Assembly (NCBI GenBank): GCA_964057225.1
Contig: OZ059898.1
Location: 6,634,001-6,698,000, forward strand
From: Auanema rhodensis
Taxonomy: Eukaryota > Animalia > Nematoda
Length of the DNA: 64,000 bases
Reading direction: 5' to 3'
Shown here: positions 11,380 to 56,271 of the stretch, one piece after another
Layout of the letters: every line of letters starts with the position of its first letter
How positions within the stretch are numbered: the first letter of the stretch is position 1
Program-made: the position numbers and the translations under genes
The notes under the pieces: model-generated
Databases searched by the model: none
What the model saw: only the letters and a program-made list of their open reading frames with translations
Told to the model about the DNA's origin: nothing

Positions 11380-11862
11380 TTAAGAATTAGTTTCAGTATC
11401 CTCTTCTTCATTTTCTAATACAGAGGCAGCTACAGTGAATAGTTTTTCGTATTCTTCCAACTTCTCACTTTTAAGTGTTATATTATGTTGTATTTTTTGT
11501 TCAATCTAAAAAAAAGTACATAATTCAATATATATGCATATATAACCTGTTCATTATCATATTGCACTTTTCGTAATTCGTCCATCTTAAGTTTTGCAAC
11601 AGCAGCCCAATAAGCTAACTCATGATCATTTTGTACATCTAGATCAAACGGTATACTTATCGAGGTATTTTCACAAGAATCAGCAAATCCCTTTTCCTTA
11701 AATTAAAATAAATAACAATCACTAATACTAAAACCTTACATCTGTTTGAACTTCAACAGTTTGCTTGTCAAATACATTAATATCATCTTGAGAATCCTCG
11801 AATACAGAAAATGTGTTAGAAGTTGTGGAAGATTGTGAGAGCTTTCGTGCGAGATTCAACAT
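11380..11862 (-). CDS. Second geminin-family coiled-coil protein
   Basis: 3 exons: MLNLARKLSQSSTTSNTFSVFEDSQDDINVFDKQTVEVQTD|EKGF...HELAYWAAVAKLKMDELRKVQYDNEQ|IEQKIQHNITLKSEKLEEYEKLF...; YW-x2-VA-x6-L-x6-NE-x-I spacing matches the geminin coiled coil. Start codon less certain. Confidence 0.72.
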
Positions 11863-11961: not shown

Positions 11962-12624
11962 GTTATTCCGATTGTGGTTGACGCTAAACTACGGCCATAT
12001 GTTTTTTTGTGGATTTTCCTTATTTACGGAGCGTTATTGTTATGTCATGCTATATTTGATGCATATCTTCTGATTTTCAATCGTTTTTCAAGTCGTTTTT
12101 GGCTTTAATCCTCGGAAAAGGCTTAAGAAACTTGATTCTCTTTTTCTTAATACTTAGAAATTATCTGTTGTTGCCTGTCTTAGCCTTATAGCTAAACTTC
12201 TGAATACATTTTCTTCTATAAATACTATTCAATTGAAAGCTATTGATCATATATATGTATATATTACATATATATGTTTAATGATTTGCGTTATATATAT
12301 GAAAAGTTTGCAAATCCACAGTTTCACTCAAATTTCTCACAGGTAAGTACTAGGGCAGTACACAGTGTTGTGTAATATTTTATGATGTCCTGTAGTTTGT
12401 TTATACGCAAGAGTTTTTTTATGTAATTTTGTTTTGAAGGAGATCGTCCTTATGTTGTTTATTGATTTATATGGTCGTTCACTTCTTATATGTATTTATG
12501 TTCGTGGAATGGCGTTAAATTTGCATAAGTTAATCGCTAATCGACCATTTTCAATCATTCTTTTATAAAACAGTGCATCACATTATAATGATTAGAGTAA
12601 AATTTTGGGAATGATATGTTCTGC

Positions 12625-13032
12625 TCAAATCACATTGCACTGGAACGAGCTCTTCGGGCGATATGGGTTCATCTTGTCGTTGGGAAATCCTGTAATCAGA
12701 GCATCTTCTCTGCTAAGCTCCTGTGTGTATCTGAAATAAATATATATAATAATAATCTACATTGTTGCTATAACTGCACATTTTGATTTTAATACTAGCT
12801 CAATGACTCTAATTGGGATATCGTTTGTTTGAGGTGGGTGTGGTTTATGTGTTGCAAAATGAAAACATTGCAAGATTTTGAAAAATGCATTAGCAATTTC
12901 CTATTAGAAAAACACAAACCTAACGAGATCAGCTGCTGTTTGGGAAATTGGTGTTCGACGCATATTTCTTTCACCACGTAGTTGATCTACTTGTTTTTTA
13001 GCATGTTGAACAGCTTGATCTCTCCCGCTCAT
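12625..13032 (-). CDS. Heterotrimeric G-protein gamma subunit (GGL domain, CaaX), 72 aa
   Basis: Exons 13032-12920 and 12730-12625: MSGRDQAVQHAKKQVDQLRGERNMRRTPISQTAADLVRYTQELSREDALITGFPNDKMNPYRPKSSFQCNVI*. Has V-x-QLR-x-E, D-x-L, NP[YF] and C-terminal CNVI. Confidence 0.93.
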
Positions 13033-38626: not shown

Positions 38627-38640
38627 GTTACCATGGTAAT
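38627..38640 (+). promoter_or_regulatory. X-box (RFX/DAF-19 site)
   Basis: GTTACCATGGTAAT, a near-perfect X-box palindrome ~180 nt upstream of the ift-139 ATG. Confidence 0.85.
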
Positions 38641-38817: not shown

Positions 38818-41800
38818 ATGCAAGATAATTCTGATCCTCGCTTGAGTACGATTGCTACAATTATGTATTACATTAGGTATGTTTCTCTATTGAGAAAGAA
38901 ACAAGGTAACACGTTTCAGAGAAGGGTTTTATGGCACTGCTTCCAACTATTGTGATACCAAAGGAGTCTTAAGAAGTGATGTTGATCATGAGATGTTAGT
39001 ATTGAAAGGAGTTTGTAGTATTCTAAATGGTATGACTGGCATTTTGCTATTGCCAATTCGGTGTTTGTAAGGTAAAACAGCTGAAGCTCTTCGTATTCTG
39101 GATCCCGCTAAAGATGGACCATGTGGCTTAGGAGCTCGGTTTGCTCTTGTAATTGCACATCAGCGAGCTGTCAATCCAGGTTACAAAATATAGATAATAT
39201 GAAAGCGTAATATCGTTTTTAGATAAACAATCAATTGTTGAATTGGAGAATGAAATCCGAGAATTGTCCAAAAATTCTTCGGATATTGGAATGCTCTCAG
39301 CTGGAGAAGTTCTATATTTTTTGGATCAACCACAAAAAGCTAAAGTAGTGATGGAGAAGCTAATAGAGTTCGAGAATAATTATCCGGAGTCTCGTAAAAA
39401 TCCTAAAGTTTTAACTAAATCCATTCATAAAATAATACTTTACTTTTAAGTTGTTATCTCTTTTGGCCTGGATTGACTTAGCATTAAACAAAGAACAACG
39501 AACAACAAGACAACAATTTGAACTTGCTGCTCAATTGGTAGATTCTAGATTAAAGTTAAAAACGTTAAGTCATTGCTTAGGGGTATCCCGACGGTTTTGT
39601 GGGTGTATCAAGAATTTGTGAACTACATCGTTCTTCTGCAGAAATGAAAGTTGTTGCAAAGGTTTTAAAAACATTTTGTTGGAACGTATATAAATGAGAA
39701 AACATTTAGGATATGATTACAAATTTTCCAAACTTTATGCCTGCCCATATTGAAAAAGCTAAAGCAGGAATTGTGGATCATGATTGGGAATCTACAATTA
39801 ATGCTCTACAGAACAGTATTATGGCATCAGAAGTTAATAATTTATTTAAAACAAGTATAAATATAAATATTTAGGGATATAACGCCTATATTAGTTTTTT
39901 ACATGTACTTTATGCTGTATGTGCTAATGAAACTAAGGTTGAAGTAACCTTGCAGGAATTAAGGGTAATTCCAATTTTTAATTTTTTTTTACATCATGTC
40001 TTTACATGTTTCTTTAGGAAGCTCTCGAAGCTGCAGAAAAGGATAATCATAAACTTTATTATCGTATATCATCAATATTAATTCGCTGTTGTGTTAGAAA
40101 TAAGCATGTTCTAGTAGCTTCAAAGTGGGAAAATCTTAATTTTTTTAAATTTTTATTCTTTTTTTTTAAGACAGCTACTAGCCAAAGCTATACAACTTCA
40201 TGGAGCCGAAAAATACATGGTTGAAGAACTTCGCCTAGCTATGGCAATGGAAGATGTAAAGGAAGTTTCTGAAATAGCTAAAGATTTAATTCGAACTGGA
40301 AACACCGATCCTTATGCTTTATTAGGTAGATTGCTAGAATTCTGATATGAAAATTATTGCTATTTTAGGTGTTGCAATCAGTTATCTAATGAGCGGAAAA
40401 ATCATAGAAGCTTCTGAACAGCTCGAGTTTGCCCAACAATCCTATCCCAACCTGACGTCTAGTCCGGTAAAGGAACTTCAGCTCTTATCGGTTTCAACCA
40501 CCCCCATTTTATTCTCATGACGCGCACTTGTGAATGAATAATATTAGATATATTCTGTAGATGTTAGACTTACAGATTCATAAAGAGCGGTCATCTGGAA
40601 AAAAAGAAGAAGGGGTAGCACAAAACCGATTAGAGTGGGAAGGGCTTGTCAAATTTAAAATTTTTTTAATTTAGATTTTACATCTGATTGCTGCAATTGT
40701 TGCTAAAGAAAAACAACACGATTTCGAAGCTTTTCGTAGAAGTATTAGCGATGCTTTAACAGTTCATAAAACTTCACTTCAAGTTTGAGTTTATAAAGAA
40801 ACTTCAAAAATTAGTTTTTCACAGAATATACCATATGGAATTGACTACCTATTTGTTTTTGATGCTGATCTTCTATTCACTATAGCCTTACAGCTCTTAG
40901 ACTTCGCTCCCCTGGTGGTATGTTATTAATTGCTTCTTGTAAATACATGACGTTTAGCCAGTCAAAAATCCTGATGAAACTCTCAAAATGGCAGAATCTT
41001 TGTTACAACAAATTGTAGACTGTTCTCCAGGTTTCGAATTGATGATATGTCTCTATGTTTATTCTATGCCATGTTGTTAGGTTTGAGTCAGATAGTATAT
41101 ACCTTAGCACGTGTGCTATATTTAAAAAGTGAAACTGAAAATGCGGAACAGATAATTAAGCTTTGTCTGAAGAAGAATGAAACAGTAGCTGAAACATATC
41201 TTTTAAGAGCTCAGGTAATCATAATATAATTTAGTAATTTTGAGCAATAATTATCATTATTATTTAGATGCTTATTGATAAAGGGCAAGTTGCCGAAGCT
41301 GATGCATGTTTAACCACAGGACTTAATTTTAATTTCGCTGTCCGAGAAAGTTCTCTTTATCATCTGATCAAAGCAAAAGTTTTCCAGGTAATCAAAATTT
41401 ATTAATAAATTAAGAAATTTAAAAGAAAAATTATAAAACCCGTAGCGTGTCTAAAACAAATTCAAATGGCAAATGTTAATCTATGTAGACATTAGTACTC
41501 GATAGTATTCCAAAGCAGTAACGAAAGTATTATCTTTCCATACAGCTCTCACAAAAGTAAACCTGAAAAAAAAATTTTAAAAATGTTTTAAATCATTTTG
41601 CCACTAACCAATTTCGCTCTGAAAAGTTTTGGATAGAAAATGCGTCTTTCTCTAGGCAAGATAATTCATTACGAAGTTTCCTGATAGATTTCTCGAATTC
41701 TTCAACTTCTTCGGTTACAAACTGCCTTTCTTGGTGAGCGTCTGAAAATCAACATAACATAAATGAAAACCAGCAAAATAACATACGGGAATGCATTGCA

Positions 41801-44800
41801 TTCATTGTATCTTTCCTAGGTTTTAAATCAGCAAGGGGAACAAGGACAAGCTTATCATCCTCTGGTAACTTTATCCTCTTAGAATCCTTGAACAGAGATC
41901 TGAGGATTCTCACCCTACTCGTCAAAACTGTATGCGAAAAATCACTTCCTTTCGCTTTGGTTAAGATAAATACTAAAGAAATTATAAAATAAGAGAAGAG
42001 GAAATTGAGATTGCTACCTAAGTTTACACGGCGATCAGCATTTATTGAAGGTAATCCATTAATAGTTATACTAGCAGCACGAATACCTTCAGCCAAACGA
42101 ATTATCTGTAAAAGATGGATTATTTTTTTCCAATTTTTGAATTAGTTTACTCGGAACAGTTCCATATCAAATAGCCAATCATTACAAACCAAAACAGTCT
42201 GACATACTTGTAAAAGAAGTGCTATGATATCAATGCACTGAAATATATCAATGTTACACATAATTTAAAGATTCATACCTCAAGATTATTAGATAGTTCT
42301 AATCTTTCTTCCGATTTATAATTATGTCGTAATGCTTCTTCTAACATTGAAGAACAATTCGTTGCCTAAATATAGTTAATTGTTTATATAATAAACATAT
42401 TGAGTAACCTGACAATCTAGAAATATTGTTCTAGATTTTCCGACATAAGCGAACAATTTCATTGTTTGATATCTTGATGATTCAATTGCTTCTCTAGAAG
42501 CTGGTCGGAAAACATAGTATCTATATATTTTTTTGCATTCTATTCAAAACTCCTAAAAATTTCTTACCTGTACATATCTTGGGGATCATTACCACCTAAC
42601 ATACTTAAAATTGTTGATTTTCCTGCTCCTTGAGGACCAATCGCGCCTACGACATCAAAGTTTGTATTATCAGTCAAATATTCCTGAATTAATGATATAA
42701 CCATATATATATATATATATATATTTGAATAGTTTACGTTGAAAAACTCTTCAAAGCTCATAGAATCATTCAAAATCTTCTTAGCACTTGGCATTCCTTT
42801 TTCTTTAGTAGTAGGTGTGGGTGTTTCATTTGTAATAAACTTACGACCTTAAACAGTCTACATATTAATTTAAAACATATTAAAATCAACCATGATGTGA
42901 ATAAGCAGTTGAAGAACTCGGATTAGCTTCTCTTCCACCATAGCTTTCATGAGTAGTAACAACATCTTCTTTTTCCAGAATACTGTCATTTTCACGTGGT
43001 CTAGTTAAAAGCTGTAGTGCCCCTTTGCGTGATGCTAATTTTGGTGAAGTTAAATCTTCCTAAATTTTTACTTTAAAATGTTATTTAACAATACTATTAT
43101 GCTCACCCTCCTATGACTACTATGTCTTAAGGTTCGACTTCCTCCGGGAGGTCCATTCCATGACGATTCTCTACTTTTCATTCTTTAAAATAAACAAATG
43201 TTACTTGAATATAAATAAACAGAAAAATTATTCGAGATGCAAAGCTTTTTCGCTTTCAAAAGTTTAATAAGGAAACAAAAAAGTAGAAAATTCATTTATT
43301 GGATGTTGGGGGAGACGCCAGAGAAAAAATGAAGTCAGGGACGCAGAGTTAATATTATATGGGAGTAAAATAAATAAATAATTTTCATACGGGATAAAAA
43401 CGAGAATACTTGAAATTTTTATCAAATAATTTGGAAGTTAAAGAAAGACTTGCGTACTTAATATAGAGATGCATAATTATTTATAATTTACATATCACAA
43501 AGATCGGTTGATCTTAAAAAAATTGAAACACATACATGTGTAATCTGAATATTATTTAGCGCCGCGGGGAAACGGAACGAGCAGTAGAATTGCTGAGAAA
43601 TGGCCTAAAACTTCCTCAAAAAGAAGTATCTTCTAATTATTTGGCCAGGAAAGAGGGTACCGATGCTCATAGAATTTCCATACAATTACAATTAATCGAT
43701 TGTTTACAAACACTCAAAAGAACGGTAAGAATGCTGTTTTGAATAGTACGAATTTCATTTTCTGAAGCATGAAGCAGAATCTGTCATGGACAGTGCAATG
43801 GAACAATGGCGAGGCAAACCTGAAGAAGAAAAATTAATTCTTTTAAATGCTCAGTTGCAAGTAGCAAAGGGTGATCCCGATGGCGCTTTAGCTATACTGA
43901 GCAAGGTGAACTTTTTTTTGAGCAATCAGAATAATCTTTGAGTAATAGGTTCAACCAAATCAGCCAAATTATCAAAGTGCTCGAATAAAAATGGCTGAAA
44001 TATATTTAGATGAGAAAAAGGATAAACGCATGTTTACTATGTGTTATAGGTATAGTATTCTTATATTCTTAAAACATTTTTGTTTTTAAGAGAATTGATG
44101 AATTCTGTTCAAACCCCAAGCACTTTAACCCTGCTAGGTGATGCGTACATGAGCATTCAAGAAGTTTAAACAATTATTTTATTTACTATGAATTGTTTAT
44201 ATTATTTTTAGCCCGATAAGGCAATTGAAGTTTACGAAAAGGCTCTAAAACTATCAGGATCCAGAGATTTGGCTCTAACCGAAAAAATCGGAGAAGCTTA
44301 TGTGAATTGTCATCTTTTCTCAAAGGTTGCAATTATTTTATTTTATTATACTTCTTTAATTACATTTTCAATTTCTAGGCTGTAAATTTCTATGAATCTG
44401 CTATGAATTCCAATAAAGATAGTAAAATGAGATTGAAGTTGGCCGACCTTCTTCTAAAATTGGGTAATACTGAGAAATGTGAGCGTATACTCAAGCAGCC
44501 TCTTAATGATGATCCATCTCCTATTGGTAAGAATTTTTAATTACATATCTGTCCTTTAGTACGATTTATGTTCAATGCTATAATGCAAGCTTCTGTTTCT
44601 CACATCTCTTGAGAGTAAATTGAGCTTATTGCAGCTGAAATTTTGCCTAATTATAGAATTATGACGTGATTAAATATTCAGACCCTATGGTGATTTCGGC
44701 ACATGTTCAATACCTACAGCTGCTTTCTAGGCTTCACCTAGAAAATGGAAAAATAGCCGAAGCTTTAGAAGATCTTTATAAGTAATTGAGATGTTCGGGT

Positions 44801-47800
44801 TATTAAGTTAATGGTGTGATTTACAGTGCTAAACAACTACAGCTGAAGCTTATTCAACGTAATGTTTCTGATTCTCCTTCTAATACGTTGGCTAAAAAGG
44901 AGGTTGCCAAGTCTGTTCAATGAAAGTTCCATATTGTATTAAACAGCTCTAATTTAAGAATTGACTGTTTGATGGCTGAACTACGTATGACGCGTCGTGA
45001 AATGAAGGAAGCATTGGAATTATATAATGATGCTTTAGCATATGAGCCAACTAATCTAAAAGTAAGAGATACTGATTTTCAATAATACATTCTTCTCTTT
45101 TGATAATTATCTAACTTGACTACTTTAGGCTGTTCTAGCTATGGCAAATATACATTTGATATGTAATCGTTTAGCCAAATGTCAGGAATCATGTAAACAA
45201 GCTCTAGTAATGGATCGTCACAATGAACAAGCTATACTAGTGAGTTGTGCTAAATTAATGGGGAGGGGGTAAAGAGAAAATGTATACAATGTCAAGTGAA
45301 AGGAAGAGCGACACTATGGACTCAAGTACCAGCTTTAATTGGCTTCATAATAAGTATAATAGGTTTCATTGTGGGTTATAGACATACAATTGTTCCTATT
45401 TATTAGTGCAATTAGTATTATTTCACATGAAAGGTAGCCCCTTCTAGCGAATCAGATTAAGAAAATTCTAATATCAAATGAGATCTCTAGCATGTTTGAT
45501 TCAAAACTACCGTTAATAGCTGTTCGACTCATGCATTATATTTCACTAATACAGCTTAGCGACGGAAACATAATCAGAGATTAAGGCTCATGGGCCCATA
45601 TATGAAATGGGTTCACCTTTGCGCTTACGTGCAGCTGTAATTGTGATTAATCCTGAGGTTTCGGTTCATCACAAATCAATATAGTTGGTACGTTTCTTGA
45701 GCATCTGTTCCTATAATAATCCCATTGATTGTATGAATAGTGTGCTGCCGGTATGTTTTTTAAACCAATAGATCGATATTCACACATATATTAAATCTAT
45801 ATATAGTCGTATAGATAGATAGATATATGTAATATACTAAAATAGTCAGCCATGTGCTGCGCTTGATGTCCATATAAGCATTAATATAGCTTGTCATTAT
45901 ATTATTTCATGCGTAGATCTTCTCCTCTGAATTCCATGCTGAGCACTCGTAATTAAACAAGCTACATTACTCCTCATCTGTCAGTAATCTTCATTCAACA
46001 TGTAAATATATTTAATTAAGGCTATATAACGTAAAACATCATCATATTTCTAAATGCTTAGTATGATGCTTTTATCTTAATAATGCTATATATTTAGCTT
46101 AAATGAGCATCTGAAATTTGTATAACATATCCTTAAAGATTTATTTTGCATAGATAAAAAATGAGAAAAAAAAAACAATTAGGCTACAACAGCTATTAGC
46201 AATTCATTTATTGATTCTGCGCTTCCTTTTACTCAGAAAATAGATAAATACTACCTATTAATGATATTATGAAATATTACTTATAAAGTACACCTTTATT
46301 TAATAATTTTGAGAAATGTTTTCTATGTATACTAAAGAGAAAACCAGAACCAGTAGCTTGTTCACACTCAATACTCTTGGCCTGCTATGCTAAAGATGAT
46401 GGTTCAGTTGACAAATGGAATGGACGATTAAATTTGGTTGGAAACTTCCTTTCCTGTCTGAAGAAAGTTGTGTGAACTATTTAAGTTTTAAAAACTGAAA
46501 CAGCCTGAGCAGCATCAACAACTGCACAAGCAATTTTCTAGAACTCATAAACTCAAATGGTTCGAATCGATTTGCCATAGGGACAAGTGAATGAATATTA
46601 GATGGTCGTAGTCTAAACTGCAACAGCAGGCGCAATTGGAACAACAGAAACATCAGCCATTCACTAAATTCCATGTGGCAATAAAAAGTAAAAAAAGACG
46701 TTCAATTCGAATTTTCGACAGATATACTAATGGAATACTACAGACTCTTTTGGGTATGTGCTCTATCTAACACCAAGCATGACACTCACGACCGTTGAGA
46801 ACTTGAACTTCAACAATCGCGTATTGTGTCATAATTGGAGCTAGTGATTGGTGGAGAAATGGGAAGGCGGGAAACATATTTATATTTTGAAATAAAAGAA
46901 AAAGGGAAATTGATATTCTCCCGACGTTATGCATGACACAATCGAATCATCATGAACCAAGCGTATGATGGTTCGCTTTGTGTCATACACAAAATCCAGG
47001 AATCAATTAGTTAAACGTGGTAATATTATAACCAAAAAAAATAAAGCAAAGGTACAAAAAATTATTATTTAACGTTGTGTAGCAGCAAAATGTAAAACTT
47101 AATACTAGTCTAAAGCGTAGCAGCTTACGAATATATTCCATATGTCCGCTATATGGGCATAGAATAGTCAGGCAATGAACGGCATGCTAGAGCAGATGTG
47201 GATTTTTGAGGTCAACGAAGGAACAGATGCCTTGTCCGCAGCCCGTGGCACTGACAGAGAGAGAGTGAAGGGAAGGGTTGAGGGAATAAGAAACGAATAG
47301 AAAATGCAGAATTTAGCAGATGAACACCAACTGAATTTTCATAATGACTGACGAAGTATAATACTAGCTTTTTTGGAGAGGCTCAATAGGCGCCAAAACA
47401 GTGAATAGGTGCAGTGATCTACAGTGATCTTTGACCAAAATAACAGAATTATCAGTTCAAATACATAGTAACAAACTAATAAAAGAGCTGTTAAGAACTT
47501 TGTGGAATTAGAAGAATACATAATTACTGGGACTCGATCAACACATGCCGTGCACGACATAAAGGAAGCATCAGGTATTCAAATACTGATGCTTCGCTTT
47601 AGTGTCATAGACGGCATGGTGATTCGGACCAGTATTGTCGAATTACGGTGGAGGTAGAATGGGTCAGATGTAGCAATTTTTGAAAAGAGTGGGGTTAGGG
47701 CGGGTGGGGGGAAGTGATATTCACCGGACTTCGTGCACGACACAACCGAATCATCATAGCCTGTACGAATGATGGCTCGCTTTTGTGTCATATACGAAAT

Positions 47801-50800
47801 CAGGGAAAGATGATAAGTGGGATACTACTGGCCTTATTTTTTACGAAATGAATGATATGTAGAAACAGCCGCATGGGATGAAATATACACTAATGGAAAC
47901 AGGTGGAAGTAGAGCATAAGCGGAATAAGTAGTTGAATACTGAAGTAATACTGAAACAAGCAGAGTCCCCAAATGACTCTGGCATAGGCAGCATGACAGA
48001 GAGGCCGAGGAATCGAGGCACCTTATAGGAGCAATCGATCTCGCAGCAGGCGTTGGAGGCACAAGGGCCACACGCATACATAGACATACAGCTATACATA
48101 GGCATAGACACATGCTGGCTATTGAAACGGCCTTCGTGCAGCAGAATAAAAGCAGAATAAACTAATGAGAGTGGAAAAGAAAAGTATTAAGTAATAGCTT
48201 TCTGTTTCAGCATCATCATTAGAAATTCTAATTGTGAGGCTACTCATACAGTTGGCAGCAACATCAACTTAACTATTACATAATCATAAAGTTATCATAG
48301 CACCATACAACTATATGATATAAAACAAATTGCTCTCATCAGTAATATGATGATAGCTGTTGAGAATAGCTGCTACTCATTTGAACTGTAATCATCGTTT
48401 AAAGAGTAATTGTAGATCAAACATAGCAGAAAATTTTCAATTTTTTGATGTGTACTCGTAAAAAAAGATTAAATAAGAATAATGTTCATACTACAAAATG
48501 ATAAAATGAGGGTAGAAAAATGATTTTCCATTTTTTAATCATTTATTGGCCTTTATATAAGGAAAATACAGGTGTCGCTAACGTGTCGTGACATACAACA
48601 TACACATTTTGTTTTTATCAATATTCTCATGTACATCTGAATCTGCATAGGCGCCGTTGTGATCGCCTTTGTGTATATATGCGCATGTTGCATGTTGTTG
48701 TGACGTTGCTTGCGTGTCTGTATGTATATGTGCGGGTGATCAGTGAAAAGAACGATAGGGCGGGCGCAAACGGCTAACGACATGCCTTATATAGCAGGCA
48801 TATATGGGCGGAGCGAGTAGTGCAGATTAGGAGGCCGGCCATGTGTCAGAGATAGGCAGTAGTGCATGACATAAGAGAGATGGATCTAGAGAAATCAGAG
48901 ACATGGAGATGAAAGAGAGAATACGAATGAGAGGATATAAAGAAGAAGAACGAGAAAGAGAATGCGAAAGACTGCATGGCAACTGGAGACTGGAGACTGC
49001 CGCTGGCAGTATTGGTCCTGATGCTGACGAGCTGCCCGGTATGGCTCTCTCTGTGGCTCTCTCCAATTTGCAGTTTCTCTCAACATCTCTCAACTTAACA
49101 AGCCGATCGGCTCTCTTGTGTCCGCCCTCAACTGCCCCTCAGCACGATGGCAGGTTTTGAGCTTGTGAAGAGACTCAACTCAAAGTTTAACTAGTATTAC
49201 TAGCTACGGCTTCATAGAATGAGTTTGGGCTACTAGATCTTGGAAAGAGGGCGTAGACTGACCCAGCGAAGTGATTGGGCATAATACATATATCCTGAAG
49301 TTATTGAGAAGTTAGAAGAAACAGGTCAAATTCTCAAGTTAAAGACATTGAGCTGCTAAAGGGGTATGAGAAAAATGTGGAGAAAAAGAAATATATACGT
49401 ATATATGGAATGAAATATATTAATTTAAATGGAAAATTTTGTATAAATTAGAAGAAGTAATAAATCAATCAATGGAGAACTCCAGAATAATTTTTTTTTC
49501 AGATGATGGCTGATTTATTATATCTTCAAAATAATGTTGATGGAGCTATGGTTCATTTTGTCAATTTATTAGATAAATGTCCAAGTTAGATAATTATATT
49601 TCTACTGATTTTCAAAAATTATTTTAATTTAATTTTCAGATCATTATCATGCCTTAGCTCGATATATAGAACTTGCATGGAGAAACGGGCATGTAGAGCA
49701 GGTTTGTATAAAATGAAATGTGTGACGTAGTATATACCTGAATTTTAAAGGTCGAGAAACAGCTTAAAAGGGCTTTGGAGCATAATCCGAGAGCTGCAGT
49801 CGATTCAGGATACAACTATTGCCGTGCGCTTCATCAATGGTGAGTGGATTGCTATTTGAGGGGGAGGGATGAAAGGATGTTGGTGTTTCTAATAGGGATA
49901 TACGAATAGGGTAACCATAGATGTATCTTTATAAATGAGGAGAAAAGAGTGAAAAACGAGTAATGAATAGGAATATACATAGAAGATGAAGAGTAAAGAG
50001 GAACAAAAAGATGAATTTGTTCATCTTTATTCAAATGCAAGTTATAGGTACTCTGGAGAAACTAATTCAGCTCTGCAATCTTTCAATCGAGCTCGAAAAG
50101 ATTCTGAATGGGGAGAGAAGTCAATCTGCAATATGATCGAAATATGTTTAAATCCTGACAACGAAGTTCAAGGAGGAGAAACTATGGATTATGAAGATGG
50201 GTAAGCTATATATAACCTGTGGACAGTTGATTGTCTATAAGATTCAATAGAAATTGCAAGTTTTAGCAAAAGAATACATTATTGTAGTTTGTAAGAAATA
50301 GAAGAAGAATGAGAATAAAACGAAGAAGAGTGAGAGAGAAAAGAAAAAAACGTTCTTTTCCTCTTTTTTTTTTTGATGGAAAAAGCGAAAGAGTTGTATT
50401 TGAGACCATATGTGATGTCTTTGTTCAATCGAATAAAACATAAACAATCACTTTGACTGTTATACTTTATTCAACATTCTGCTTATTTTCAATTTTTTTT
50501 GATCAAACGCGTTGTTCTCTATAATGTTTGTGTGTGGACTTGATCAAAATTTTCTATTTTTAGAGATCAGGCTGATCGTGAAGTTGGAGTTAAAACAGCA
50601 GAAAGATTTCTTAATGTAAGTTTATTTTGAAATAAAAGAGATATTTGTTTTGAGATTTATTATTAAATGAAAACATCAAAGTATATGAGATATGATGATA
50701 AAAAGCAAATTTTTTGATTGAAAGAGAATGTAACACGATCTATTGCATATGGAGAAATTATAAACTACAGAGCTATGAAAGAATAAAAGAAAGAATGAAA

Positions 50801-53088
50801 GAAACTTATACTGTAATTATACAAATTATATTTGATATTATACCTTGTAGGAGCTACGATTAAAAGGCCAAAGCACAGAAAATAGATATCAGTTGATGGA
50901 AAATTTCATTATGGTATGTAGTCGTGATCGAAACAAGGTACAACTGGCTTTACAAAATCTTTTAACAATGGTTGGACCTGATTCAGTGAGTTTGTTATAT
51001 TTGATTCAAAATATTGTTAATACAACTTTTAGGATGATATATCACGAAAAATAAAAAGCGCTGCTGGTGATTTAGAAGGAAAACAAGTAAGAGATTTAAT
51101 GACAAATTTTCTGAATTAAAGAAATATTATAAAAGTAAAAAATATATAATATATATATATTTATATTTATAAAGTTGGCTTGGTTAAGAGGTACTACAGC
51201 ATACAATAATTCTGCTCCCGATATTGACTGACCTATAGGGGTCACTGTAAAATTGCTATCAGCAAGATAATAGGATCAACAGCAGTACATACCTTCGTAC
51301 ACAATAACACATAAAGCAATAGAAAAGAATATAAAAGAAAGAAAAAAAAGAAGGGAAAATCTAATTATTCTTTCGATATATGAAGATTTTATATAAAAAT
51401 TATGAAATTTCTTGCGATAAATTTATATGAATGTATGAGATTTCATAATTCATTTTCATGTGTTCTCAATCATATTCTCTTGATCTATATCATATAATAT
51501 AAAAGAAAAGAGAGATTAGACAGGATAAAAGATATATATCAATGAGAATAATATAAATAAAAATTTAAAAAAGAGAATAGAAATTTTGATTTTATAAGCT
51601 ATATTATAAGAAAATATTATAGGATACACCTGTAGATTCTGTTGGAGCAGTACTTGGGGTTGCACGAGCATATATGCTACAGAAAAATATTCAAAAAGCT
51701 AAACAAATTCTAAAAAGAGTTGTTAATTATCCATGGTCATTAGAAGATGCTGATTATTTGGAAAAATGTAAGTTTTTCTTATTATTAATTAATTAAAAAG
51801 AAGAAGAAGAAGATGAAATAATTTTTAAATGAAATAGAATAGTAAAAAGAGAATGAATATATAGATTAGACCTTTATATATGAGAATAATTCTTTATACA
51901 GATATATATAGTTAAATAAGATTTTTCTTCAAAATAATAAAAAGAAATAGATAAAGAACATCATAAATGAAATAATAATATTAAAAACATATCATGTTCT
52001 TCTTTTTTTTTCATAAATTTTAATAGTAATCATAGTTAGCAGATTGAGAATAAGTACATTATTATCGTTTCTCATTTAAGATAATTCTCGAAATTCTATA
52101 GTAAAAGCTTAATTAGTTGGAATGTGACCTTAAGACAGAAATATAGGATCAAAGTTAAGCTAATGGGTAATGATAGTACAAGAAGACATTGAGCTTTTGT
52201 TCCTTTATCGTTCTCTTTGCAACGTATGCTTTCCTTTTGAAATAAAAAAAAAGGACAAATAAGATCTTCTTTTCAACGATATGAACAGGAAGAACCTGTT
52301 GTAGTGTATTCTCACCTATGGTGGGCAATGAGAAATAGGAACATCTCGTTTTTTTATGGAACAACGTTCAATAAAAAAGGACGGATGTATCTATTAAATG
52401 AAATAAATATAATAAGGAAGTACTCAAAAATACTTAAAGCTTAAGCTGTTTTAACATTCATTTATTTATTTTATTAATAATTGCTATAGTTAGTATAGTT
52501 AATATTAGTTATATTATTAATTGATAGAAATATTAATTTAATTCATAATCCTCTTATAAAAAATTTCTTCAATACTAATAATAGATTCTCAAAATCATTA
52601 TAGACTTCTGATTCCTTTCAATTTTTTTTGTTTTAAATTCAATTTGCGCCTATGTGAGCCTTGATATGTTTGGTTGTTAGGAGTTAATGGCTCTCTCAGT
52701 GAATACATGTGGTGATTAGATTCAAATATGGATTGTAGGAAGAAATTACTCAAAGAAAGAGGAGGGGATGGCGAAAGAGAAAAAAGAAGATTGAGGAGAA
52801 GGTAAAATTAAAACAAACGAAGAACAGATCGATTAGAGGAGCCTTTAGGGTAGATTTCGAAAACAAGTACAAGAGAAAGGAATACTAATCATGTAAAGTT
52901 GTGATAGAATATTTGAATGATCTAAGCAATTATAAAAAGAAATATCCAGTTCAAATATTTGAAATTTTAGCATTTTCATGCGTGGAAGTAGCTGGCATTA
53001 ATAGTGATAGGATGTTATCAAATGAATTGTTCTGTTGTATTGGGCAAGCGTATCGTTTTATCAGTTTTCTCGACTAAATAGAGAAATC

Positions 53089-53124
<36 letters not shown>

Positions 53125-54583
53125 AAGAGAGGTTACCGGGTGTTGCGAAAAGGATGGAAACAAAATCTACCTTCTTATCGTTCATTTTTATATCTCTTAC
53201 CTATTTCTACCTCAAATTTGACTATCTTTATATTTTTAATAATTTGTTTTATTAAATAATATCTATAACTATATATTATAATAATATCTTCAAATATTTC
53301 TTTTTAATTTTATACAAAAGAAAAACAGTGTAAATATTGTTCAACGACAAAAAGCTCTTATTCGAAAACTCCTCCCAACTTTTTGACTAAGCATTCACAC
53401 ACTTTTCTAGTTCCCAAAAGTTCTTGCCACTCTTCTGGATAGCTTTGCATTTTCGGGATTGAGAGCCCGCCGAGCACTTAGCTTTTCAGCTCTAGCGTGC
53501 GAAAATTTTAATTTATACCAAAGTTAAAATGTAGAAATTTGCTTGCTTCAATAGCATATTCATGAATAGCAATAACTAAAATTATATTTTATTTTCTATT
53601 TCCTTTATTATTCTTCTGATTCACTTGTATTCATCTTCAAGATATGACACTTATGCAATTAAAGATCTTATGAATATGATCTTATTGCAAAGTGTTATGT
53701 CTTGCAGTTGATATACATACATACAGTATATACTATATTCATTTTAATATTTAATTTTAAATTATTTTATATAAATTTCTTTGAAAAAAAAAAGAAAAAG
53801 AAGAAGAAGAAATCAATTGAAAGTAATGTGATGAGCTTGAATTCAGTTTGAAATGCTTGGCATTTGTCCTATGTGAGTGTGAGTGTGTGTGTGATGCATT
53901 ATGAAAACAATCTAAACGAATCACAAAATGCTTTCTATTGCAAAAAAAAAAATGAAGTCAAGTTCAATTATTGATTCAAAGAAAAGATGTGCGGTCACTA
54001 AAGCAGCTGTTCTATAGAATAGTAAGAGATATTTAGATAGATATAGCATTAAAGCGATAGAGAGAAATATTAGAAAGAACTTGTAATATAGATTGAAATG
54101 TTAAAAATTGTAGAAATTTGATTTTAGAATACAACAACATGTATTGATTTCTATTTGTTGTTGTTGTTATTATTATTTTTTTATTTTTCAATCAAAAACT
54201 AAAAATAAAGATGAGATAGAATAAAGAAATAAAAGGCTTAAAATCATATAAAATGATAAATGTTTATAAAGATTATAATTATATTTATTAAAACACAAAT
54301 GATTAAGAAGATATGTGAAAAGAAAAATATGATGGTTTGTAGTTAAACATTGTTGTATTATGCTCTTCTTTTCGTTGGTAATATCTAAACTAGAAAGAAA
54401 GAACTAACAGCTGTTACGATGATGATGGTTGATGCTTCATCCTCCTTTTCAATGTTTTGCCTATTGTAAGATTCATAAAGATAAAATCATTTTTATAGAA
54501 AATTAAATGATACACTTAGTTTACTTTTATTTTTTTAAAAAGGTGTCTCTCTCTCTCTCTCTCTCTCTCATAGCCTCTCTCTC

Positions 54584-54642
<59 letters not shown>

Positions 54643-56271
54643 CTCTCTCTCTTACATTTTGGTAGCATCTAGGCTTTCATGAATTATAATTCTTTTTCTG
54701 CCGTTTTAGTTTTCTCCATGACAACGACGATGTCTTCGTGGGAAGAAAGTTACTGAAACTGATCTGTGGATGAAATAAAAGGGAAAATGTAGATGATGTT
54801 AATAGAAATGAATAGAAATATCATTTATAAAGATTTATAAAGAGGGAATAATTTAAATACAAATCAAAGAATAATATCCCATCTTTTTTCTTTTTTTTTT
54901 CAAAACATTTTAAACGGATTATGAGGAAGTTTGTTGATTTTTTGGAAATTTTTTGTAATCAATGATTGCTTTAATAATTATTTTCAAAAACTAAATATAT
55001 ATCTATATCTATATCTATCTATATCTATATATATAATTATTTATATACTATGATGTATGAATTAGAAGAAAATTCCTCGTTTCATTATACTTCCTACTTT
55101 TGATAATTCAATTCTTCAATTATTAAATATAATTAATATACATATACTATAGTAACTATATGAACATATATATATATATATAAAGCTAATTAAATTTTTT
55201 CCTAAAATTGATAACTTTTAGAGAAATCTTTGATGTTTTTCATTAACTCAAATAAATTTCAAATATAAGTAATATCTATCTCATTTAGATATTTGTATCT
55301 AATTTATATAATCTGATTACTATATATGTATAAATGGTTTGAATTGTCTCGATATTATTATTTCCGATTAAATTTCATATTTATTAATAATCTATTTAAA
55401 TTCAAAGCTAACATGTTTGATACTTCATAAGCTTCTGATAATATGAACAAAATTCAAAATGACGATTACTATTGTGAGATGAGGGAGTTAGATAGCAGGA
55501 TAGTTGAAATTATAAAAATGAAGGGAAACATCGAAACATACATCGAGTAATGACAGCTGATTAAATTTTATTTAATTGTTATATTTACAATGCCAATTAT
55601 ACAAATCTTTGGCTTTTATTTTAATTTTTTAAAAAAAATAAATAATATTTTGTTTTTTTTTTAGAAAAAAATTATTTTTTAAATTAGAAAAATATAAAGG
55701 AGAGAGAAATAAATAGAGAGAAAATGGATAGATAGATAGAGAGAGAGAGGGAGAGTGAGAGGGAGAGGGATAGTGAGAGGGAGAGGGAGAGAGAGAGAGA
55801 GAGAGAGAGAGGAAGTTACAAAAAAAATAAATTGTTGTTAAACAAATTATATATTTATAGGTTGGTTATTGTTAGCTGATATCTACATAATTCAAAATAA
55901 ACCAGAACAATCTGGAAATATATTGAAAACAGTTTTATCAAAGAATAAATGTAGTTTAAAAGCTTATGAATTAATGGGTTATTTAAATGAAAAAGAAGGA
56001 AAATTCATGGATGCAGCAGAATATTATGAAACTGCATGGAAACTTAGCTCCAAAAATAATCCAATCGTTGGTAAGATTCTTATATAATTTTAAAATAATT
56101 TTAATTAAAATATATTTCTTTATAGGTTATAAGTTGGCATATAATTTCTTAAAATGTCGAAGACTTTTTGAATGTTTAGAAGTATGTCGACATGTACTTG
56201 ATAAATATCCAACATATCCTCGAATTAAAAAAGAAATTATGGATAAAGCAAGAATGCAATTAAGATCTTAA
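38818..56271 (+). CDS. ift-139: Intraflagellar transport complex A subunit IFT139/TTC21B (TPR repeats)
   Basis: TTTTCAG/ATG 38818; many TPR exons; [31 protein letters not shown]; [12 protein letters not shown]; [10 protein letters not shown]...[25 protein letters not shown]. Large introns 41388-43559, 45240-49502, 51768-55860. Confidence 0.93.
41481..43181 (-). CDS. smg-9: NMD factor SMG-9, nested antisense in an ift-139 intron
   Basis: [24 protein letters not shown] (P-loop), [39 protein letters not shown]; complete ATG-to-TAG model inside intron 41388-43559. Confidence 0.9.
46773..46838 (-). ncRNA. pre-miRNA hairpin, mir-63/64 family; predicted 5p UAUGACACAAUACGCGAUUGUU (46833->46812)
   Basis: ~66-nt hairpin; G-U wobbles favour the minus strand; seed AUGACAC. 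Confidence 0.75.
46927..46992 (-). ncRNA. pre-miRNA hairpin, mir-63/64 family; predicted 5p UAUGACACAAAGCGAACCAUCA (46987->46966)
   Basis: Near-perfect stem (ATGACACAA/TTGTGTCAT, CGAATCATCAT/ATGATGGTTCG); paralogous to the hairpin at 47730. Confidence 0.8.
47544..47618 (-). ncRNA. pre-miRNA hairpin, mir-63/64 family; predicted 5p UAUGACACUAAAGCGAAGCAUC (47609->47588)
   Basis: CATGCCGT...ACGGCATG basal stem and GAAGCATCAG/CTGATGCTTC upper stem; first 15 nt differ by one base from recalled cel-miR-64/65 UAUGACACUGAAGCG. Confidence 0.85.
47730..47798 (-). ncRNA. pre-miRNA hairpin, mir-63/64 family; predicted 5p UAUGACACAAAAGCGAGCCAUC (47792->47771)
   Basis: ~69-nt hairpin TTCGTG...TACGAA; same seed; close paralog of 46927-46992. 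Confidence 0.8.
48786..48793 (-). promoter_or_regulatory. Candidate TATA box for the antisense pri-miRNA
   Basis: TATATAAG on minus strand ~1 kb upstream of the first hairpin, in a locally GC-richer segment; a second TATATAAA on minus at ~48552-48559. Confidence 0.45.
53092..53121. repeat. (GA)n microsatellite
   Basis: Direct reading. Confidence 0.9.
53638..53704 (+). ncRNA. pre-miRNA hairpin, mir-63/64 family, sense to host; predicted 5p UAUGACACUUAUGCAAUUAAAG (53643-53664)
   Basis: CAAGATATGACACTT pairs with AAGTGTTATGTCTTG using G-U wobbles valid on + strand; TGCAAT/ATTGCA and AAGATC/GATCTT upper stem. Confidence 0.78.
54545..54652. repeat. Interrupted (CT)n microsatellite
   Basis: Direct reading. 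Confidence 0.92.
55739..55812. repeat. Interrupted (GA)n/polypurine tract
   Basis: Direct reading. Confidence 0.9.

Follow-up and report, generated by a model that had tools for sequence, protein, structure and literature searches.

A probable polycistronic microRNA gene of the mir-63/64/65/66/229 seed family, antisense in an intron of TTC21/IFT139 in Auanema

What do four similar hairpins, packed into about one kilobase on the opposite strand of an intron of a cilium gene, represent, and could they form a microRNA (miRNA) gene with its own transcription? This question is raised by a stretch of 64,000 nucleotides (nt) from the nematode Auanema rhodensis (contig OZ059898.1; this whole stretch is hereafter called the window, and positions are counted from its first letter). 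An earlier note on the window had proposed that the hairpins are precursors of the mir-63/64 family, lying on the minus strand of an intron of ift-139, transcribed independently of that gene and multiplied by local expansion. The analysis presented here makes it, in our judgement, highly probable that the locus is a polycistronic miRNA gene of the mir-63/64/65/66/229 seed family, placed antisense in an intron of TTC21/IFT139 in the Auanema clade.

The hairpins themselves are unambiguous. Their minus-strand 5p arms all start with UAUGACAC, with 5' ends at 46833, 46987, 47609 and 47792, exactly where the note had put them, and these four copies fall within 960 nt; the 8-mer TATGACAC is found five times in the window, compared with 1.8 occurrences expected in the 128 kb of both strands. 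Folded as minus-strand RNA, hairpins 1 to 4 (numbered from the lowest coordinate) reach free energies of -35.4, -38.6, -45.0 and -36.7 kcal/mol, with z-scores of -5.5, -6.0, -9.0 and -4.8 and 0 of 200 dinucleotide shuffles as stable, and in a sliding fold they are the top four minus-strand structures of the whole intron. The size of 65-75 nt given earlier was only approximate: the predicted precursors (pre-miRNAs) measure 58-59 nt in the five window hairpins (the four of the cluster and a fifth, described below), and the full stems of hairpins 1-4 extend over 78-110 nt. The stems contain 28-33 base pairs (bp), with lower stems of 9-22 bp in hairpins 1-4, dimensions that correspond to canonical Drosha and Dicer substrates, for which an imperfect stem of some 30-35 bp, roughly one helical turn of stem beneath the cropping site and a pre-miRNA of some 55-70 nt are typical. 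In the nine hairpins compared, including one from Dictyocaulus viviparus, the lower stem continues for 9-26 bp below the predicted cropping site, and in all nine the first nucleotide of the 5p arm, U1, pairs with G, leaving a weak end at the 5' terminus of the arm.

The family is indicated by the seed. AUGACAC occupies nt 2-8 of the presumed 5p guide in all four hairpins, and the first 8 nt of the 5p arms are identical to those of cel-miR-64, whose 5p sequence is UAUGACACUGAAGCGUUACCGAA (PMC3997968, PMC2632898). The likeness of the Auanema arms to cel-miR-64-5p continues past the seed (UAUGACACU.AAGCG). Of the first 15 nt in the 5p arm of hairpin 3 (UAUGACACUAAAGCGAAGC...), 14 agree with it; GCGA follows beyond the seed in hairpins 2 and 4, and CGCGA in hairpin 1. 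The proposed membership of the mir-63/64 family is thus upheld, as is the observation that the arms begin alike and diverge towards their 3' ends: they part ways after about nt 8-16, beyond the common 8-mer.

A second line of evidence comes from the way in which the stems have changed. We aligned eight hairpins (the four cluster members, hairpin 5 and three orthologues from Auanema melissensis), which gave a consensus stem of 25 pairs. Standard pairs fill 89% of the cells of this alignment, against 26-46% when the partners are slid by 1-3 columns, and 14 of the 25 pairs show two-sided changes; the observed values were reached by 0-1 of 500 shuffles. Covariation is strongest in the lower stem, where one pair is CG in four hairpins and UA in the other four, and the seed pairs are invariant. 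The strands can be told apart as well: G·U pairs number 28 on the proposed strands and 11 on the opposite ones, and the proposed strand folds better in eight of the nine hairpins, with hairpin 1 favouring the minus strand by 15 kcal/mol (5 G·U pairs against 1). The covariance model R1, derived from the eight-hairpin alignment, assigns 65-84 bits to the proposed strands and 18-42 bits to the opposite ones. In the window and in seven TTC21 loci (about 146 kb) this model detected no additional copy beyond the syntenic orthologues, namely those of hairpins 2, 4 and 5 in A. melissensis and that of hairpin 5 in D. viviparus.

Conservation points in the same direction. When the window was compared by BLASTN with the TTC21 locus of A. 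melissensis (L001), the coding exons aligned at 65-82% DNA identity, and the alignable parts of the 4.3-kb intron were reduced to three islands: hairpin 2, hairpin 4 and a block upstream of the cluster (Table 1). Hairpins 2 and 4 align and their flanks do not, as is usual for a canonical miRNA gene. In hairpin 4 more than 40 nt of 5p arm and lower stem are unchanged between the two species, and differences have accumulated in the loop and in a large part of the 3p arm; an invariant 5p arm beside a diverged loop and 3p arm is the pattern expected of a 5p guide. The orthologous intron of A. melissensis is 1.5 kb long and holds two hairpins (2 and 4), compared with four here. This difference favours the local expansion that had been proposed, and it follows that hairpins 1 and 3 are either gains here or losses there; hairpins 2 and 4, for their part, predate the split between the two species. 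The same intron is hairpin-free and only 33-470 nt long in Mesorhabditis spiculigera, Caenorhabditis auriculariae, Ancylostoma ceylanicum, D. viviparus and Heligmosomoides polygyrus, and its position could not be located in the TTC21 gene of C. remanei. As far as these loci sample the group, the cluster and its promoter appear to be an Auanema innovation. The intron position itself is old, and the intron has been enlarged: compared with the lengths just given for the other rhabditids, it measures 1.5 kb in A. melissensis and 4.3 kb here.

The identity of the host was also borne out. Pfam TT21 domains follow one another in order (N-terminal, second, ARM_TT21, fifth and C-terminal, with E-values down to 1.9e-23) on plus-strand exon pieces between about 38.8 and 56.3 kb, and the host is therefore the TTC21/IFT139 orthologue, the ift-139 of the earlier proposal. 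In RNA contigs assembled from three low-depth runs carrying the same species label, the host is spliced on the plus strand with GT..AG borders; one contig ends at 45243 and its loose letters match at 49507, a junction that gives the intron 45240-49502 as it had been called. Since the hairpins lie on the minus strand and this intron belongs to a plus-strand gene, the cluster is antisense to its host. The best protein match to the C-terminal exon of the host is CAI4231394.1 from Auanema sp. JU1783 (89% identity, with the next relatives at 60% or less), and JU1783 is A. melissensis (PMC9984802); the source genome is that of an Auanema-clade rhabditid, with A. melissensis JU1783 as the nearest relative found. 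As an observation on the host itself, an X-box-like palindrome, GTTACCATGGTAAT, is present at 38627-38640, preceding the start codon of TTC21 by about 180 nt, and is kept as GTTGCCATGGTAAT in A. melissensis (L001 5269-5282); it fits control of this cilium gene by RFX/DAF-19.

How would a cluster in this orientation be transcribed? The minus-strand TATATAAG that the note had placed about 1 kb upstream is indeed there (Table 1); we read it as a TATA box, and its counterpart in the A. melissensis alignment is TATAAAAG. Upstream of it, the conserved promoter block of 49 nt includes TAATCT and terminates in CTCCGCCC, with about 13 nt between its end and the TATA box, and from this arrangement the start of the primary transcript (pri-miRNA) is predicted near 48760. 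Downstream of the TATA box, minus-strand conservation with A. melissensis is limited to the hairpins; because they are the only conserved elements there, an independent RNA polymerase II (Pol II) pri-miRNA is the simplest reading, and the conserved TATA box and block thus lend support to the independent transcription that had been suggested. On the minus strand AATAAA is absent between 48541 and 46301, the stretch that contains all four hairpins, and then appears at 46300, 46212 and 46145; such a trio at 46300-46140 after an AATAAA-free stretch suggests a transcript of about 2.5 kb. We also considered an RNA polymerase III promoter, composed of a proximal sequence element and the TATA box, and rejected it: a run of four T (T4) follows the TATA box within about 40 nt and would end such a transcript long before the hairpins. 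A. melissensis likewise has a T4 run shortly downstream of its TATA box, with nothing conserved immediately downstream. In the same neighbourhood, an AC/GT-rich stretch just downstream of the TATA box in the minus sense (48655-48744) folds on the plus strand into a hairpin of -33 kcal/mol, for which BLASTN revealed no conservation in A. melissensis.

Table 1. Coordinates of the hairpins, the putative transcription signals, the conserved islands and the host intron in the window; L001 is the A. melissensis TTC21 locus
Feature	Position in window	Strand	Position in L001	Description
Host intron of TTC21/IFT139	45240-49502	+		4263 nt, GTGAGT...TTTTCAG, spliced RNA contig
Conserved upstream promoter block	48807-48855	-	12744-12790	49 nt, 88% identity
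TATA box of putative pri-miRNA promoter	48786-48793	-		TATATAAG, 1001 nt upstream of hairpin 4
Hairpin 4, first in predicted transcript	47734-47792	-		predicted pre-miRNA 59 nt, 5p UAUGACACAAAAGCGAGCCAUCA, full stem 47720-47807
Hairpin 4 island	47714-47810		12155-12251	83.5% identity
Hairpin 3	47551-47609	-		predicted pre-miRNA 59 nt, 5p UAUGACACUAAAGCGAAGCAUCA, full stem 47525-47634
Hairpin 2	46930-46987	-		predicted pre-miRNA 58 nt, 5p UAUGACACAAAGCGAACCAUCAU, full stem 46908-47008
Hairpin 2 island	46923-46999		11673-11748	88% identity
Hairpin 1, last in predicted transcript	46776-46833	-		predicted pre-miRNA 58 nt, 5p UAUGACACAAUACGCGAUUGUUG, full stem 46767-46844
Candidate polyadenylation signal AATAAA	46295-46300	-		first downstream of hairpin 1; weak, inferential
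Hairpin 5	53643-53701	+ (sense to host)		intron before TTC21 C-terminal exon; 5p UAUGACACUUAUGCAAUUAAAGA

Several observations weigh against an antisense miRNA gene of this family and have to be set beside the evidence given above. (i) At its gathering thresholds Rfam reports no match in the window (the mir-64 model, RF00846, has a gathering score of 51 bits). In E-value mode hairpin 3 reaches mir-64 at 29 bits (E 0.031), which is below threshold, together with a weak match to mir-977 (32 bits); hairpins 1, 2 and 4 have no mir-64 match even in this mode, which also returned nothing relevant for hairpin 5 or the D. viviparus hairpin. With only a sub-threshold match, it is the seed and the 5' half of the arm that argue for membership, not precursor similarity. 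The Rfam mir-64 model is built from Caenorhabditis precursors, and the miss therefore speaks to the similarity of the precursors rather than to membership of the seed family. (ii) The intron has zero contig coverage in the three RNA runs, in which the host exons are covered; contigs assembled at such depth are uninformative on small RNAs. (iii) Nothing in the A. melissensis intron corresponds to hairpins 1 and 3, which hence have no orthologue behind them. (iv) A minus-strand AATAAA stands at 48547, between the TATA box and hairpin 4, and the conserved promoter could in principle drive another transcript. (v) The count of hairpin copies is limited to the window and about 146 kb of related loci.

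Three other explanations can be opposed to an antisense miRNA gene. The hairpins might be sense miRNAs released from the plus-strand pre-mRNA of the host, with no promoter of their own, an idea encouraged by a host that is expressed and spliced, by plus strands that also fold (-20.5 to -42.7 kcal/mol) and by hairpin 5, where the family uses the sense strand of this same gene. Hairpins 1 and 2 even read CAUGACAC at the 5p position of their plus strands; we examined this as a sign that both strands are used and rejected it, the string being an automatic by-product of a near-perfect stem. Against a sense origin, folding of both strands leaves the plus strand 6-15 kcal/mol worse in three of the four hairpins, hairpins 3 and 4 lack the seed on that strand and have CACGACA instead, the G·U pairs favour the minus strand, to which the covariance model gives 65-84 bits against 22-39 bits for the plus strand, and the conserved TATA promoter points in the minus direction. 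We regard a sense origin as improbable. The hairpins could also be copies of a dispersed inverted-repeat transposon, that is, a miniature inverted-repeat transposable element (MITE), or of some other palindromic repeat, and not miRNA genes at all. Four similar inverted repeats close together, two of them (hairpins 1 and 3) lineage-specific, would suit such an element; yet in A. melissensis, whose introns cannot otherwise be aligned, hairpins 2 and 4 are found at the orthologous positions, the compensatory changes and the strand-specific G·U pairs are not features that a DNA palindrome maintains, and the invariant part coincides exactly with a known miRNA seed. Nor does the copy number resemble that of a MITE, which is expected in many near-identical dispersed copies bearing terminal inverted repeats and target-site duplications, the covariance model having found only the syntenic orthologues in the sequence searched, and this explanation seems to us very hard to sustain.

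It might finally be argued that these are conserved structured intronic elements with a role other than that of miRNAs, acting for example on splicing or transcription of the host through antisense or double-stranded RNA, with a seed match that is coincidental or vestigial. The gene opposite the cluster is expressed in a very specific pattern, and the conserved promoter within the intron could yield an antisense regulatory RNA, both of which would be compatible with such a role. What speaks against it is where the conservation lies and what shape the hairpins have: conservation is highest in the 5p arm, which opens with the 8-mer identical to cel-miR-64, and the uniform pre-miRNA length, the lower stem and the U1·G pair in nine hairpins are requirements of Drosha and Dicer that a splicing element would not need. 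We consider a structured element of this type to be a poor candidate, with little chance of being correct.

If the locus is an antisense miRNA gene, its transcription, its cropping and dicing positions, the choice of guide strand and the targets can be predicted from the geometry of the hairpins and the established behaviour of the family. RNA polymerase II would start some 25-30 nt past the TATA box, at the minus-strand site predicted above, and would produce a transcript of about 2-2.5 kb running through hairpins 4, 3, 2 and 1 in that order. Drosha/Pasha would crop the stems about 9-13 bp or more above their base, generating the 58-59-nt pre-miRNAs, from which Dicer would release 5p guides of about 22-23 nt that start with U, this U1 being paired with G in the hairpin. 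The guides would be loaded into miRNA Argonautes and would repress mRNAs with GUGUCAU sites, the four of them having a common seed and different 3' parts. Hairpins 1 and 3 would have arisen by local duplication in this lineage, unless they were lost in A. melissensis.

The closest known system is the mir-229/mir-64/mir-65/mir-66 cluster on chromosome III of Caenorhabditis elegans, which spans 754 bp (PMC2486268) within an intron of gcn-1 (PMC10086521). Both clusters are intronic and contain four hairpins with a 5p AUGACAC seed in less than about 1 kb. Their hosts are different, gcn-1 in C. elegans and TTC21/IFT139 (by its Pfam domains) in Auanema, as the earlier note had stated; and unlike the C. 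elegans cluster, the Auanema cluster is antisense, has a conserved TATA promoter of its own, differs in the 3' halves of the mature sequences and scores below the Rfam mir-64 gathering value. The C. elegans mir-63 gene is assigned to the same seed family (PMC2486268) and is a single gene, not a cluster. A more distant relationship was proposed by Ibanez-Ventoso et al. 2008, who grouped miR-183/96/263/228, with seed AUGGCAC, together with miR-63/64/65/66/229 (PMC2486268; also PMC10086521). The 5' region of that group is related to that of the Auanema hairpins and differs at one seed position, and for this reason the two would be predicted to have different sets of targets. Ciliated sensory cells express the miR-183 family; what connects the Auanema cluster with cilia is its host gene.

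The cluster has a partner on the other strand. Hairpin 5 (Table 1) folds with a free energy of -38.9 kcal/mol (z-score -7.8) and has the AUGACAC seed and a predicted pre-miRNA of 59 nt. It has an orthologue in A. melissensis (L001 15862-15944, plus strand), in the same intron and orientation, with 81.5% identity and a compensatory change from U-A to C-G. A further orthologue is found in the strongylid D. viviparus (L006 18714-18790, plus strand; 5p UAUGACACUUCUGCGAAAAGGGA, -41.5 kcal/mol), again in the same intron and orientation, flanked by exons homologous to window positions 51623-51774 and 55863-56072. In Mesorhabditis and two Caenorhabditis species the hairpin-5 intron is 41 nt long or absent, and the A. 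ceylanicum and H. polygyrus loci stop short of it. Hairpin 5 shares with the cluster its seed, its 59-nt geometry and its host gene, and differs from it in strand; lying on the sense strand, it is probably co-transcribed with the host. Since it is present in the same intron of D. viviparus and the cluster was found only in Auanema, the sense member is the older of the two, and an inverted duplication of it may have given rise to the antisense cluster. A wider scenario, which we put forward as speculation and judge unlikely as a whole, is that TTC21/IFT139 is an old home of AUGACAC miRNAs: hairpin 5 would predate the split between Auanema and Dictyocaulus and would be co-expressed with an RFX/X-box-type host in ciliated sensory neurons, echoing miR-183/263/228, and in Auanema an inverted copy would have gained a TATA promoter in a neighbouring intron and grown to two to four members. 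Were this true, the same seed would have been uncoupled from host expression, and one gene would yield same-seed miRNAs from both strands under two controls.

Other features of the TTC21 gene deserve a brief mention. The gene spans about 17.5 kb here and 5.5 kb in Mesorhabditis. A protein-coding gene is nested on the minus strand of an earlier intron (about 41749-42806), with its counterpart region in A. melissensis at L001 7779-9488 (minus strand). One of its exons has a Walker-A P-loop (GPQGAGKST), and no Pfam family was matched above threshold. In A. melissensis the nested gene aligns with a minus-strand gene model of 411 aa, around which the annotation there splits TTC21 in two. The last TTC21 introns contain GA/CT dinucleotide microsatellites (53076-53131, 54547-54658 and 55734-55824), which match GA repeats of the A. 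melissensis locus and are the source of spurious RERERE/SLSLSL open reading frames.

Taken together, the cluster very likely consists of new, so far unannotated members of a well-known and duplication-prone nematode miRNA family, and not of a new type of element, and what we understand of miRNA function in general is unchanged by this locus. Two features are mildly unusual: the cluster lies antisense behind a conserved promoter of its own, and the same cilium gene harbours a sense partner with the same seed. A full-text literature search for the four mature-like strings returned no paper, and no Auanema miRNA catalogue was found in the searchable literature; the hairpins would therefore be the first annotations of this family there. 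In C. elegans the mir-229/64/65/66 cluster is relevant to lifespan and stress (PMC10086521), so that a family with such roles would now be annotated for the first time in a three-sexed model nematode. The 49-nt conserved promoter block offers a ready reporter reagent. With an old sense member, a genus-specific antisense cluster and a species-specific doubling from two hairpins to four, the locus would be a clear and compact example of how miRNAs are born and turn over.

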